DNA from: Perkinsus chesapeaki ATCC PRA-425
Taxonomy: Eukaryota; Protista; Perkinsozoa
Reading direction: 5' to 3'
Assembly (NCBI GenBank): GCA_013115145.1
Contig: JAAPAO010000128.1
Location: 3,440-67,439, forward strand
Length of the DNA: 64,000 bases
Shown: positions 32,833 through 41,800 of the stretch, piece after piece
Layout of the letters: each line of letters opens with the position of its first letter
Numbering within the stretch: position 1 is the first letter of the stretch
The notes under the pieces: generated by a model
The model's database searches: none
What the model saw: only the letters and a program-made list of their open reading frames with translations
What the model was told of the DNA's origin: nothing
Translations under genes and position numbers: made by a program

Positions 32833-35800
32833 ATGACCACTACAAATCATCCTGTTCTACATAACCTGTTCAGACAGCAGGCAGCTAAGACACCAAATAC
32901 TGTTGCTGTTGTTGGTGGAGGTGCTGGTAATAGTAAAAGGGGAATAATACCTATATATTGGCGACATGCAGTATATAGCTATTTCTGTTCTTCATATGCC
33001 TTATGTACGGGGACATACTAGCTTAACACCTTGCAAAGCAGTCTATCACACTATTTTATAAAGACGTCTTTATTTTACTCTTCGCCTTTGCAGGTGATCA
33101 TCCCTACACTTCCCTTACCTATGCCGAGCTAGATGCCCTCAGTGATTCTATGGCTGCTAGGCTACAATCAGATTACAACACCGGTATAGGCTCACTCGTT
33201 GGTATATATATGCCTAAAGACGTCGGATATGTTATAAGCTACTTGGCAGCGCTTAAGGCTGGTGGAGCGTAATATATGGGGCACGGGTAACTCAGTTCTA
33301 TTTTGGGCTTTGTATATTTCCAATGGTAGTCCATGTATTATCGCGTTATACTGCCAGATATGGCCGTAATAACTTTTTGTTTTCGGCTGTATAGCTTTAT
33401 TAATGCATTGGTGGCATAATCATTATATTACTTAATTATATACTTGTATGCACTAGATAATCTGTTGTATCATGTCATTTATAGCGAAGTTCTTACCCTT
33501 GTTGATATCATACGTGAACATTAACATCTGTGAAAATGAGGCGATTTATTATGATAAAATTGTGTAATAGAGCTCGCCTGCTGCCTCAGGTACATGCCTA
33601 TAGATGCCAACTACCCTACTGACCTGTTGGACATGGTCATGGAGGACGCTAAACCGACATGTGTTTGTAGGGCTGCCGCATTATTATCGTATTTGACGTC
33701 CCTTTAGGCACCACTAAGGAACTTGCTGCTAAGCTGCCTAAGTCTCAGAGAATCTTTATATTTGATGATGATGTTACGGTATGGCGCAAAGAGTTAAGTG
33801 ACGGCCGCAAGCCTAAGGACCTGCCTGTGAAGGATACGGATCCGGCTTATTGTGTTTACTCTAGTGGTAAGGAGGTTGGGTATTAGTAGTGTTATATTAT
33901 ATTTTATACTTATCATCACATGTCGATATTAGAAGGGTAGAATGGTTGAATATATTGCCTATTATGAATAATAAACAGTTGATCTATGACAGATAATGTG
34001 ACGGTATCAATGCTGATTCTACTTGACATTACAGATCTATGTTTGTTATGCGTCCACCACTCTATAGCTTATTTATCTAGCTCTAATAACAGTGCGGCGG
34101 AGTTTGCGGGTGGCATTATTATTACTAGTATTTGGCGAAAAGTCGGTATGAATCTTTTATCAGGTACGACTGGCAAGCCTAAGGGTATTGTATGTCCACA
34201 TAGAGGTGCAGTGGTGAGCTATGATTACAGGTTTAAGGAGTACCCTTATGGGGAAGATGAGAGAGAAGCTTGTAATAATGGGGAAGATACTGTTATTAGT
34301 TCCTCGGGGCTGGAGGTCTTGTTTTCCCCGTCCATGAGTGACCATTCACAGAACCATGCAAGACTTTGCTAACACTTAGCCCGTGCCTACTCTAGGCTAC
34401 CTTTCTCAATTCTCGTGATCATAGGTATAAAAATTGGGCTTACCCCGGTCTTCGGTGCATGGTGAGGTTGTTTTGATGGTGGAGCTAGATTCTAGCTCCA
34501 CCAGATCACCAGATCTAGCTGCTAGATACCCAGAAGTAGTTTCCTAATCATGTTCGTGACCGAAAGAAATATTAACTGCTCAAAGAGTACTGTACTTACA
34601 CGCCAACTTAAGTTGCGCCGAACTATGCCGAATCCATGGACATATTCTATCATGGTCAGGTAATGTGTTTTTCGTATGGGAGCTCCTCCGTCCCCTTTTA
34701 AAAGGAGCCACCCTCTATGTTGTTCCTGATACGGTTATCTATGACTCAGCTGAGCTGCCTAAATATGTAAGTCTACGATAATAGAAGTGATATGCCAGAG
34801 GGAAATTCGGACGGAGCTAACATATAAATATTTTATTATTGCGTCTTGACTGTAGCTAGGCAGCGGGTGGAAAGCGGCGGTTGAGCATTATTTGGTGATG
34901 CAATGCACAATGGGCTTTTAGCCATTCGGCTTCAAGGGCTTTATAGCAACGTGTAGTGGTGTAAATGTATATATGTATTTATATGTGTATTTATGGAATA
35001 TAACACTATAAAATAACGAGTATAGATAATAATCGGTATTGTAAACGATAGTGTATGTTCAATACTGTTCCTACTGTATGAATTTATACACTACTTTATT
35101 CTAATTCGCTATATCATCTTTGGAGATTGTCTGTTGCATTGGCTGCCACGTTTTAGAATTCCTACGTAACCGCAGTGTCTTGTTCTAAACCCGTAGAAAT
35201 TGTTATAACGAATGGTGACTTGCACAGCCTCGATGATCAATTTTCGATACATAACGTTTTTTGCTGAGAAAAAAAATCGGTGAGTAAAATCTTCCGGGTG
35301 GTTTATGGCAACTTGATGGATGAGGTGCTATTTCAGATTAAGAAGAACAAGATTACAAGGATGCTTTTTACACCGTCGTTATTGGAGGCTATGTTGGACT
35401 CGCCCGGTGTAGCTGACATGACTGGCCTCCAGCTAGTGGTAGGAACGGCTGTTTGTTGTTGATAGGGAATCCTCGGCGGTTTCAGATTCTTTGTGGTGAG
35501 GTTGTCTCTACTCAACTACGTCAAAAGATACGTCGCAATCTTCCTAATACTCGGATACATAATCTGTAAGGAGGATAATCGCACCCACTGAGTTGCCGGG
35601 TTAGATCATTGATTAGCTTTATTTCCGCTCTGCCACTTTCGGCGATGCCAGAAATTTTTTGATGAATTTAACGGAATTTCGTAGGTTATTTTGGATTGTT
35701 TATTGAGACAGCCAGTGTTCGACAGAACTGAGGAAGGCTGATGGATATTAGGATAACTGTATTGTCGCTAACTGCTTCCCATGGAATCTTGCGCTTGATA

Positions 35801-38800: not shown

Positions 38801-41800
38801 GATTACGTTACAGGATCTATTCGACCATCAATCTGTAAGAAATGGTATTCGAATAGAGGCAGTTTCGTGTGCGCCGCTGTACATTGTGCGCCCGGAAATG
38901 GCCGGATTTCTCAATCCTAAAATACGGTGAAAGTTCACTGTGCTCAGTTTGGGGAATCGTAGTAGTACATTTAGGGCATGAAGGGAAGTTACTAGGTTAT
39001 ATAATAAGCATTATATTGAGTAGTTATTGAAAATAGACGACCTTTAACGAAGACTGTATTATCCCAATCTTCCGAATGAACTGTGATACTTCAGCGAGCA
39101 TGGTGAACTCCAATAAATGCTACTGCGATCCTGTGGAGATTACCCTTGATAGCTGACACGTATATGAGATACTACTCCATCATCGGTCACCTACACTGCA
39201 CTAGGCCTTGAATACAATTGTGTTGAACGCTTTGGAGTGCTTTGAAGGACTCGACGGTGGTGCTTTTCAGGTTCGCAGAATGGCAGAGTTCATAGTAGCT
39301 GATAGAGCCGTTTCAGACCAAGAGCTCGACCTGTATTATTAATATGATTTTAAAGAACCGCATCTTGTCCATGTTGTTAGGCACCAGGAAGTCTCTGTGT
39401 TGCAGAAGTCGCTATTGGTGAGGCCTGCCTGTATGCAGCAAGTGCGAGCCTTCTGGCGTAACATTGTGAACGAAGGAGCATTCGGGAATTCAAGGGTGAG
39501 ACAATGTAAAATTATTGTGACGCCGTGACGCGGGTGTAGGTTCTGTTGACTGGCGCGACGGGCTTTTTGGGCTCTCATATCTTGGCGAGCCTGTTGAAGA
39601 GCAGCCCACGCATATCGGTGTACTGTTTGATCAGACCGCCCGTGCAGAGGGCGAGCTGGCATGAAGATGATGGTAAGGTTGAATAGGCATTCAATAACGT
39701 AACCTTACGGAAGTGTGTGCCGAATGTGGATAGAAACTGAGTTGAAAATGTGCTCCAAGATGGGGGGAAACATCTACTCTTTGGATGTTTCTTCTTGCTT
39801 GATCGATTCAGCTTGTAACTTATACTGTAAATATATTCCCTCTGGTGAGATTTAATACTTCTCAATGAGTTAGACTCAATTGGCTGTCGGAGTTTACATG
39901 ACAGCATACATGACTTGATGACGGCTATCCATCCGGAATCATCTGAAGCACTCCTCTGTTGAAAACGCAGAAACGAGCCTTAATTTCTTTCAAGTTTGTC
40001 AGTTCCGGCGAGAAATTATTTGATAATGTCGAGCACTGTCTGAGGCTTTATGTTAATACTCAATGTGGACAGTATCGGGTTCTGGCAGGCGTTCTATTGT
40101 ACTTGGTTCATCGAGCCCCTTCCGTGTTTCAGTCTCACCCCACTCAACAGCTTCCCCAGCTGCGGCGTGCCGTCGTCGTTTGCTGGCCACTTTAGAGCAA
40201 TACCATCTCATCGGAGGGGATGGTCTCGACTTGGCCGATGTGAAGGACCGTGCTCATATTTTGGTAAGTCTGCTCAACTCTCGGACGGCGGAGCGAAGTT
40301 TTTTGGTTTCAGGTTGGCGATGTTTCCTTGGAGAGCTTTGGTATGACGTCTGAAGATTATGACTACTGGGCCACTCATGTGGATTGTGTGGTCCACGCGG
40401 CTGCCCAGGTTAACCTGCTTTATCCTTATCAAGCACTATTTAAAGGCAATGTAAGATAGGTCACATGGCTGACCGGTGGCGTATAGGATACCGTAGTGTT
40501 TAGAGAGTCCTCGGGTCACTAGATAGAGGAATTTGTCGCTCTTGGCGATGTGGCAAAACTTGACCCATCATTTGTACTGTTCCGCGCTGGCATTCATCCT
40601 GTTTGTAGGTGCAAGCATCCGTCCATGTGGCTTCCTTCTGCCTGTATAACAAGGTTAAGCCTTTGCACTATATCAGCACCGACGCAGTTTTCCCAATTGG
40701 AAAGGGTCGCCACTTCGCCGAGGACTTCTCTGTTTTCGACGCTGACTCTCCTGTGGCCAACGAGCTGAAGAGCGGCTATGCGCAGACGAAGTGGGCGGCC
40801 GAAAATCTGATTCACAAATTCGCAGAGTCGACCGGGCTGCCGGCGGTGATTTACCGTTGCGGCAATCTCGGTGGATATGTTGGTCCTGATGGCCTCGCCA
40901 CGTGGAACCCTCGCGACTCCAACCTGGAGTTCTTGCGCGCCTGTGTGGAGTTGGGCATGGTGCCGGCCGAGAGCAGTGGTCTTAATATGGAGCTTACGCC
41001 GGTTAATGTTGTTAGTGACTTCATCGTGGGGTGCTTGTGGGACATCCGGCACACAAATGGGAAGGTCTTCCATTTGATACAGCCTCACCGTATTTCAATG
41101 AAGGAAGTGTCAAGATGTCTCCGCTCAGCTGGCTATAAGGTTGAAGAATGCTCCTTGGAGAGCTGGCCTGCTGACGGCACGTTCATGAACCGCGAGGCGG
41201 TGAAGGAGCTTTGCGGTGACACTAACACTTATGGAGTTGAGAACACCGTGTCTAGGCTGGAAGCTGCCGAGTATCCTGAGGTTCAGTTGGCGACATTCCA
41301 AGAGTACATCAGGGGCCTGGCACGTGCACAATTTTTGCCCTCGGCTCCTGAGGGTCCGTTGTCCGGCATGGTCCTGTCTCTGGTTGGTCAGCCTGCTTGT
41401 GATGACCTATTGCATGTTCTACAATCCCAAGGAGCTGTGGTGGTCCCAGCGGGAGGGTTCAAGGTTTTGTATGCGCCAAGTGGGTGCGACGTGGCGGCGG
41501 TGGTCCATGATGTCTGTGTGAAGTTGCCCGCGTTCTCTAAGGGCTCCTCTAAAGGGGCTATTATTACGACTCTTGATGATGATAAGATAGAAGAGAGAGG
41601 GCTCAACGCGTTCCTGTCGGAGGTATCTCGTGGGCTGGGCGTGCCAATGGTAGCACTGCCCCCCTCGAGCTCTGTTGACAGTGTGGCCCAGTACGTTAGT
41701 ATCTGCGGCAAACACCTTTAAAGACATCTTTTCATATTTCACTTTCCGAGCGTGTTTCACTCATCGCTGTGTTGTGCTGTCAGAAGGGTCCTCGCACCTG

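Follow-up and report, generated by a model that had tools for sequence, protein, structure and literature searches.

Does the genome of Perkinsus chesapeaki encode a working member of the glycine betaine reductase (ATRR) family, and, if it does, which reaction would the enzyme catalyze? The question is raised by a 64,000-nucleotide stretch of contig JAAPAO010000128.1 from strain ATCC PRA-425 (positions 3,440 to 67,439 of the forward strand; this whole stretch is referred to here as the window), in which the region at 32833-41721 (+ strand) contains numerous short open frames bearing core motifs of nonribosomal peptide synthetases (NRPSs). We find that the gene at this locus is real and intact. 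Its product consists of an adenylation (A) domain, a carrier (T) domain, and a thioester reductase domain (R1), followed by a tail of 121 amino acids (aa) at the place where ATRR enzymes carry a second reductase (R2). This product is probably a cytosolic, NRPS-like carboxylic acid reductase of the ATRR family that turns glycine betaine, or a close analogue, into the corresponding aldehyde, its R2 stump being noncatalytic. Its substrate, its product, its expression, and its part in the use of host betaine are what we infer; the gene itself is observed.

A 22-exon gene with a complete A-T-R1 reading frame

A guide for splicing was obtained from a HMMER search of the last large exon (40609-41718) against 1.8 billion representative sequences, which retrieved a P. 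olseni protein (FOL46_007323; P0001, 1,154 aa) with 80% identity across the entire exon and the same end point. Exon junctions (GT/AG) were chosen to preserve the reading frame and to maximize similarity to this guide, which yielded the following gene model:

32833..41721, + strand: whole ATRR-family gene (guided splicing against P. olseni P0001)
32833-32926, 33094-33268, 33590-33666, 33708-33866, 34164-34271, 34660-34766, 35337-35438, 35486-35565, + strand: exons 1 to 8
35878-35995, 36218-36366, 36831-36939, 36987-37085, 37133-37259, 37643-37738, 38084-38168, 38741-38834, + strand: exons 9 to 16
39271-39332, 39381-39495, 39540-39672, 40133-40263, 40313-40450, 40609-41718, + strand: exons 17 to 22
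38169..38740, + strand: intron 15, with an assembly gap (Ns at 38571-38670)
41719..41721, + strand: stop codon TAA, its position shared with P. olseni and P. marinus

With 22 exons, 21 introns (all GT...AG), and 1,156 codons running on the + strand from an ATG at 32833 to the TAA at 41719-41721, the model bears out the initial annotation, made from the letters of the sequence, which had proposed a complete A-T-R gene at 32833-41721 and an alveolate-like bivalve parasite as its source; P. chesapeaki is indeed a parasite of clams. Over its full length, the predicted protein aligns colinearly with P0001 (87% identity, two gaps), and it is 100% identical over aa 1-1133 to a P. chesapeaki protein that was entered in GenBank as "hypothetical" (FOL47_001218; P0151). 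The P. marinus orthologue (P0152) is annotated as "antibiotic synthetase." This P. marinus model comprises only 761 aa and has no reductase domain, but we rejected a loss of R1 in that species as an artifact, since a 100-N assembly gap (L002 10529-10628, GG680969.1) lies exactly at the place of R1. Sequence comparison shows conservation of the gene across P. chesapeaki, P. olseni, and P. marinus.

The assembly gap in the window sits in a 57-bp AT-rich tandem repeat that is found on both of its sides (38432-38570, resuming at 38671-38729). The end of exon 15 (...FFELGG) and the start of exon 16 (HSLLTIK...) together form an in-frame GGHSL carrier motif, with no residue lost relative to P. olseni. 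Lying inside intron 15, at a junction across which the protein and P0001 are colinear, the gap spares the coding sequence. The G+C content across 38403-38729, the repeat region of this intron, is 26 to 32%, versus 40 to 55% elsewhere in the gene. The introns fall into two size classes, of 41 to 49 and of 158 to 572 nucleotides, and the gene spans 8.9 kb in P. chesapeaki, compared with 5.6 kb in P. olseni (L001 6001-11608); many introns appear to have been enlarged in P. chesapeaki.

Placement in the ATRR family

The best matches to P0001 outside Perkinsus are A-T-R proteins with a C-terminal short-chain dehydrogenase/reductase (SDR) domain, 1,260 to 1,320 aa in length, with identities of 38 to 45% and E values down to 1e-252. 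They come from cryptophytes (Guillardia and Baffinella), unknown protists, and many invertebrates, including the ATRRs of nematodes, and some of the best carry the NCBI name "glycine betaine reductase ATRR." The protein encoded in the window and Aspergillus nidulans ATRR (AN5318.2; P0393) are colinear over aa 9-1046 (33% identity; E value of 6e-146). A maximum-likelihood tree of 64 whole-length sequences, comprising fungal, dinoflagellate, animal, cryptophyte, and labyrinthulid-like ATRRs, the outgroups being one Lys2-like protein (P0062) and A-T-R proteins from bacteria, placed the Perkinsus sequences within the ATRR clade that holds the A. nidulans enzyme, and this clade was separated from the outgroups with 100% support in the Shimodaira-Hasegawa-like approximate likelihood ratio test (SH-aLRT). 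Within the clade, Perkinsus is sister to a group of cryptophytes and unknown protists (100%), inside a larger, animal-containing clade (95%), at the end of a long branch (1.0). A tree of the A domain only gave the same placement (99% and 95%).

The initial annotation had named clustering with Lys2 or other NRPS clades as the finding that would speak against its proposal; both trees place the protein with ATRR instead, and the profile and structure searches do likewise. Against the Lys2 model TIGR03443, P0001 scores 269 bits, in three pieces, versus a cutoff of 1,030, while the Lys2-like control P0062 reaches 1,004 bits over the whole profile. Membership in Lys2 was rejected on the basis of this score and of the position of P0062 outside the ATRR clade. 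A Foldseek search of the AlphaFold model of P0001 (mean predicted local distance difference test [pLDDT] score of 82.8) against the Swiss-Prot models returned A. nidulans ATRR (ATRR_EMENI) as the top match, with an E value of 7.8e-85 and 30% identity over query residues 2-1133; Lys2 structures matched at 20 to 22% identity, aligned only to about residue 1032, and had weaker E values.

When Perkinsus and the dinoflagellate ATRRs were forced into a single clade, a grouping that was named only after the tree had been seen, the cost was 52 log-likelihood units (P value of 0.007 in the approximately unbiased test). The phylogeny thus assigns the Perkinsus enzyme to the cryptophyte/animal subtype of ATRR and not to the dinoflagellate one, and on this evidence the Myzozoa carry two distinct subtypes, one in dinoflagellates and another in Perkinsus.

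Two further observations on the composition of the family are of note. The closest relative outside Perkinsus (P0153; 44% identity) is a full A-T-R-SDR protein encoded by an intronless gene (L003 808-4764, on a 26.8-kb contig from SRR24204719). Elsewhere in the ATRR clade, a group of A-T-R-only proteins (P0088, P0406, and P0407; 1,037 to 1,038 aa) is sister to the fungal ATRRs, and a pair of proteins (P0142 and P0231) has an N-terminal extension or a thioesterase in place of R2, so that loss or replacement of R2 may have occurred on more than one occasion in this family.

Domains and catalytic residues

Pfam detected, on P0001, an AMP-binding domain (aa 13-372; E value of 7.6e-66), AMP-binding_C, PP-binding (aa 535-601; E value of 1e-12), and NAD_binding_4 (aa 655-924; E value of 2.5e-45). 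No match to the short-chain dehydrogenase family adh_short was found by Pfam on this protein, whereas the same family is present C-terminal of the thioester reductase in the relatives P0003, P0006, P0020, P0021, and P0024. The domains and motifs were located in the window as follows:

32833..37738, + strand: adenylation domain, about aa 9-520, exons 1 to 14 (Pfam on the orthologue; family-invariant columns)
33863-34186, + strand: A-domain motif SGTTGKPKG, interrupted by intron 4
34665..34682, + strand: modified A4, VFFVWE (alignment with AN5318.2)
35486..35500, + strand: ILCGE, with I275 and C277 (alignment with AN5318.2)
35561..35905, + strand: modified A5, aa 300-310, interrupted by intron 8, with D309 at 35900-35902
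36832-36846, + strand: A-domain motif YKTGD
36886-36933, + strand: a further A-domain core motif of 16 residues
37654-37656, + strand: A10 Lys506 (column conserved in at least 90% of 45 family sequences)
38084..38834, + strand: carrier domain, exons 15 and 16, with the phosphopantetheine-bearing S564 at 38745-38747 (Pfam PP-binding)
39540..41352, + strand: thioester reductase R1 and linker, aa 653-1034 (Pfam NAD_binding_4; PDB match)
39543-39581, 40777-40779, and 40789-40791, + strand: R1 NADPH motif, catalytic Y843, and K847, respectively
41353..41718, + strand: C-terminal tail, putative vestige of R2, aa 1035-1156

The carrier motif GG|HSL is interrupted by intron 15, and the glycine-rich motif of R1 reads TGATGFLG (aa 656-663). 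The last exon also matches solved terminal reductases, with an E value of 8.9e-22 for the MxaA reductase in the PDB. The adenylation motifs, Ser564, T656/G657/G660/G663, Tyr843, and Lys847 are invariant in the alignment of 45 family sequences and are all present here, and, as judged from this alignment, the catalytic motifs of A, T, and R1 are all intact.

Substrate pocket

In A. nidulans ATRR, the trimethylammonium group of the substrate is held by an aromatic cage (F201, W204, and W270), with E304 as the counter-charge (Hai, Huang & Tang 2019). We derived the corresponding residues from the sequence of AN5318.2 itself, by alignment:

V200/F201/W204 of A. nidulans: V207/F208/W211 in the window, conserved
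W270 of A. nidulans: I275 in the window, not conserved
N272 of A. nidulans: C277 in the window, changed
C296 of A. nidulans: L301 in the window, changed
E304 of A. nidulans: D309 in the window, acidic residue retained, a conservative change

Two more positions differ (T247, here Ser, and I305, here Val). In the alignment of 45 family members, F208 and W211 never vary, and position 207 is either Val or Ile. The A4 region reads C205-N-V-F-F-V-W-E212, the Cys codon being interrupted by intron 5 (34271|34660-34661). The initial annotation had read A4 correctly as CNVFFVWE, along with a modified A5, and the pattern that it gave for the fungal A domain also holds, AN5318.2 having ACNVFFIWEILRPLIRGAT and NCYSACETHE. 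Its further statement, that the Asp of FDxS is replaced by Val, stands in part: there is no acidic residue at the place of Asp235 of PheA, where Phe and Trp are found instead, but the assignment of Val to that very position is one of two possible alignments, the A4 loop being five residues shorter than in canonical NRPS A domains, as seen in HMMER alignments to solved structures.

A survey of the nine pocket positions in 312 proteins above the family threshold of the hidden Markov model, some large non-ATRR NRPSs among them, revealed two types of signature. The first has W, N, and E at positions 270, 272, and 304 (A. nidulans numbering) and is that of fungi and dinoflagellates (131 sequences); the second has C and D at the latter two positions, combined with W, I, V, or L at position 270. 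About 56 family members have Ile, Val, or Leu at position 270. Twenty-five proteins, the ATRR of the nematode Meloidogyne incognita and the Guillardia protein among them, have exactly the Perkinsus signature, VFWSICLDV. The evidence for betaine use by M. incognita ATRR is indirect: its expression in yeast alleviates the inhibition of growth that glycine betaine causes, and RNA interference phenotypes have been reported for it (PMC11050029). On the basis of the pocket, glycine betaine is the most likely candidate substrate of the Perkinsus enzyme.

A conserved stump in place of R2

The tail begins exactly at the start of R2. Its first residues, GPLSGMV, are the counterpart of GPLSGKV at the R2 start, and in the multiple alignment a run of 16 residues lies over GPLSGKVAVVTGASSGIG of AN5318.2. 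The TGxxxGIG NADPH motif is degenerate in the tail (SLVGQPAC). With a profile derived from the last 400 residues of 24 full-length relatives, the alignment ran, in the Perkinsus proteins, through the end of R1 and the linker to PLSGMV(L/I)SLVG, opposite ...L.GKVA.VTGA (the first beta strand of R2 and the start of its glycine-rich loop), and halted there. The protein ends about 140 residues ahead of the column of Tyr1178 of AN5318.2, and the half of the SDR domain with the catalytic Ser, Tyr, and Lys is missing. A tblastn search of the whole window with 99 R2 regions turned up only weak matches, in the linker and where the tail begins (E value of about 1e-3), and no other SDR fragment was found. 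Similarly, a comparison of the three Perkinsus tails with 14 R2 domains in hhalign gave nothing significant (probability of 0.5%). The structural alignment of the P0001 model with ATRR does extend into the tail, to residue 1133, with low confidence; the pLDDT of the tail is 38 to 65 in the full-length model and 53 in a model of the tail alone, too poor for searching. BRCT-like clusters retrieved for the tail from the ESM Atlas (score of 0.77) were at chance level and were not used. The homology of the tail with R2 is argued from its position, the short junction motif, and the low-confidence structural alignment.

In a direct alignment, the tail has 73% identity with those of P. olseni and P. 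marinus (75% in the codon alignment), and in all three species the final 20 residues and the stop codon are conserved in their positions. The ratio of nonsynonymous to synonymous substitution rates (dN/dS) among these species is 0.07 to 0.09 for the tail, versus 0.04 for the portion of this exon that encodes R1, both ratios being rough because dS is saturated. These comparisons indicate that the tail is under purifying selection in the three Perkinsus species, and in our best reading of the sequences it is a vestigial R2, no longer able to bind a cofactor or to catalyze, which would be retained for another reason. The other R2-less family members in our set either end at the R2 boundary or are shortened models or isoforms with an intact TGASSG, and none of the other family members in the set has a conserved, degenerate R2 stump.

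Proposed reaction

By homology with ATRR and with carboxylic acid reductases, the following mechanism can be proposed. In an A domain that has no Asp for binding an alpha-amino group, Phe208, Trp211, and Asp309 would face the cationic head group of the substrate, and glycine betaine, or else a small carboxylate much like it with a quaternary ammonium or sulfonium group, would be adenylated. The acyl group would be loaded onto the phosphopantetheine of Ser564, after which R1 (TGxTGxxG, Tyr843, and Lys847) would carry out a two-electron reduction with NADPH and release the aldehyde, i.e., betaine aldehyde. The formation of choline would need a separate enzyme, R2 surviving only as a 121-aa noncatalytic stump. 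In the fungal enzyme, R1 strictly stops at the aldehyde (a two-electron reduction), and R2 turns the aldehyde into choline; with R2 vestigial in Perkinsus, betaine aldehyde is the predicted product. By this analogy, the enzyme likely converts glycine betaine, or some small betaine close to it, into the aldehyde and not into choline, for which the cautious wording of the initial annotation, "choline precursor," turns out to have been apt.

Such a reaction invites comparison with the nutrition of the genus. Host-derived glycine betaine is needed by P. olseni to proliferate, and all six Perkinsus species tested failed to grow in choline-free medium without betaine; methionine was no substitute for glycine betaine, and the mechanism was stated by the authors to be unknown (PMC10577664, 2023). 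That paper mentions neither ATRR nor a reductase, and our literature search found no link between Perkinsus and ATRR or NRPS-like enzymes. We regard the gene as a candidate for a betaine-consuming step in Perkinsus. We also considered a bolder proposal, namely, that this A-T-R1 enzyme is the reason why Perkinsus needs host betaine, the osmolyte being converted into betaine aldehyde, then by a separate reductase into choline, and finally into phosphatidylcholine, with the R2 stump having taken on a new, noncatalytic role, for example, the docking of that reductase; we advance this only as a speculation, and a rather doubtful one. If it were true, the enzyme would offer a metabolic target specific to the parasite. 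Oyster and clam culture suffers major losses from Perkinsus species. In any case, the gene makes the unexplained betaine requirement of the genus experimentally approachable, and it offers a natural case of an ATRR in which the aldehyde-reductase step has been lost but a remnant of the domain stays under selection, which bears on how the two reductions are coupled.

Weighing the alternatives

Several observations weigh against the proposed reaction and its link to betaine use. Of the three aromatic residues of the cage, just two are retained, Ile taking the place of W270, and six of the nine pocket positions differ from those of A. nidulans ATRR, the sole family enzyme assayed in vitro. If its R1 acts like the fungal R1, the Perkinsus enzyme alone would not make choline. 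For P. olseni, choline supplied in the medium is no replacement for betaine (PMC10577664), so that the idea of betaine serving only as a source of choline needs an extra assumption, such as poor choline uptake. The gene is present and intact both in choline-using species and in one nonuser and hence does not explain the difference in choline use by its presence. Finally, a search for RNA sequencing runs that contain the stretch found none, two small runs from the same species yielded zero reads against 38741-44200, and the evidence for the splicing and for the 3' end is therefore comparative throughout.

The changes in the pocket lend some weight to an enzyme of the same family and chemistry that acts on another substrate: with Ile for the third cage Trp, the wider pocket could accept another small onium or N-methylated acid of those abundant in molluscs and algae and convert it into its aldehyde, and beta-alanine betaine, dimethylsulfoniopropionate (DMSP), dimethylglycine, proline betaine, homarine, and carnitine-type acids would be candidates. 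The replacement of W270 by Ile is accompanied by those of N272 by Cys and of C296 by Leu, the only in vitro assay concerns the W-N-E type and not the (W/I/V/L)-C-D type to which Perkinsus belongs, and the A domain of fungal ATRR is strictly size selective, so that such changes may matter. However, M. incognita ATRR, for which the yeast and in planta data point to glycine betaine, has the identical signature; the Phe, the Trp, and the acidic residue are retained; and it is glycine betaine specifically that Perkinsus has been shown by experiment to need. We consider another substrate possible but unlikely. Improbable, in our judgment, is a gene that runs past 41721, with the 1,753-aa GenBank model P0151 being correct and the reductase being fused to a C-terminal region of about 600 aa. 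That model has a predicted intron (41650-41783) that skips the stop codon and continues to 44211, a partial P. olseni model (P0002) likewise continues into downstream sequence, and the downstream open reading frames are near and on the same strand; yet the two read-through splices differ and are mutually inconsistent, no protein-level conservation is seen at 41722-41909, between flanks that are both syntenic with P. olseni, and the P. olseni annotation has two genes, the downstream one being a separate gene of 597 aa. Because of the positional conservation of the stop codon and of the final 20 residues, and because the tail, including the part spliced out in P0151, has a dN/dS below 0.1, we rejected the fusion as the less likely structure; the downstream part itself (about 41910-44118) is conserved with P. 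olseni and has no Pfam domain. The truncation of R2, the long Perkinsus branch, and the zero RNA reads could also be taken as signs of a decaying relic of an ATRR gene, in which the loss of R2 would mark a loss of function. This we hold to be very improbable, given a frame of 1,156 codons open over 22 exons, an intact orthologue in P. olseni, intact motifs in A, T, and R1, and the low dN/dS in both the R1 part and the tail. An aldehyde-forming ATRR acting on glycine betaine or a close analogue thus remains our preferred interpretation.

As for its surroundings, the neighborhood of the locus (25860-30770 and 45000-47650) is syntenic with P. olseni contig JABANN010000051.1. Upstream, the minus strand encodes one protein of the VHS/WW type and one of the Glycos_transf_4 type; the downstream neighbors are the 597-aa gene, which has no assigned function, and a gene of the histidine phosphatase family.

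Comparison with known ATRRs and related reductases

The Perkinsus protein resembles A. nidulans ATRR in its colinear A-T-R1-linker arrangement, the short A4 loop with CNVFFxWE, the YSxxExH variant of A5, the GPLSG at the R1-R2 junction, and the intact Ser of the T domain and Tyr/Lys pair of R1. It differs in that the fungal enzyme has a full R2 with TGASSGIG, G1036, and Tyr1178, whereas Perkinsus has a degenerate stump of 121 aa with no counterpart of Tyr1178; additionally, the fungal ATRRs form a separate deep clade in the whole-length tree. Regarding residue numbers in AN5318.2, F201, W204, W270, E304, G1036, and Y1178 agree with the cited residues, while the catalytic Tyr of R1 is residue 812 in the database sequence (G811-Y812) and the preprint writes Y811F. 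Lys2 and other A-T-R reductases share the A-T-R architecture and, as predicted for Perkinsus, the sequence of adenylation, thioester formation, and two-electron release of an aldehyde with NADPH; unlike Lys2, to which it is 20 to 22% identical, the Perkinsus protein has neither an N-terminal extension of the Lys2 type nor Asp235.

The animal and cryptophyte ATRRs (M. incognita MiATRR, Guillardia theta GUITHDRAFT_89817, Nematostella, and Haliotis) are the nearest relatives, with 40 to 45% identity and, in MiATRR and Guillardia, a pocket signature identical to that of Perkinsus in all nine positions, but they have a complete R2 SDR domain of about 250 aa (adh_short). Dinoflagellates are the sister lineage of the Perkinsozoa. 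Their ATRRs (Prorocentrum and Polarella) belong to the same family and have CNVFFVWE, but they are full A-T-R1-R2 proteins with the fungus-like pocket residues W, N, and E and do not group with Perkinsus.

The initial annotation had supposed that such a route was undescribed in alveolates. This stands only in part: the literature that we searched makes no connection between Perkinsus and ATRR, but ATRR homologues in "several protists" (eight in the survey) were already noted in 2019 (Hai 2019), and atrr transcripts of Dinophyceae were reported in 2022 (PMC9321204), so that a family member in an alveolate is not in itself new. In summary, what is new with respect to these known systems is the recognition of the Perkinsus enzyme as an ATRR with a conserved and, as predicted, noncatalytic R2 stump, its apparent membership in the cryptophyte/animal subtype rather than in the dinoflagellate subtype, and the fit of this putative betaine-reducing enzyme to the unexplained betaine requirement of the genus.

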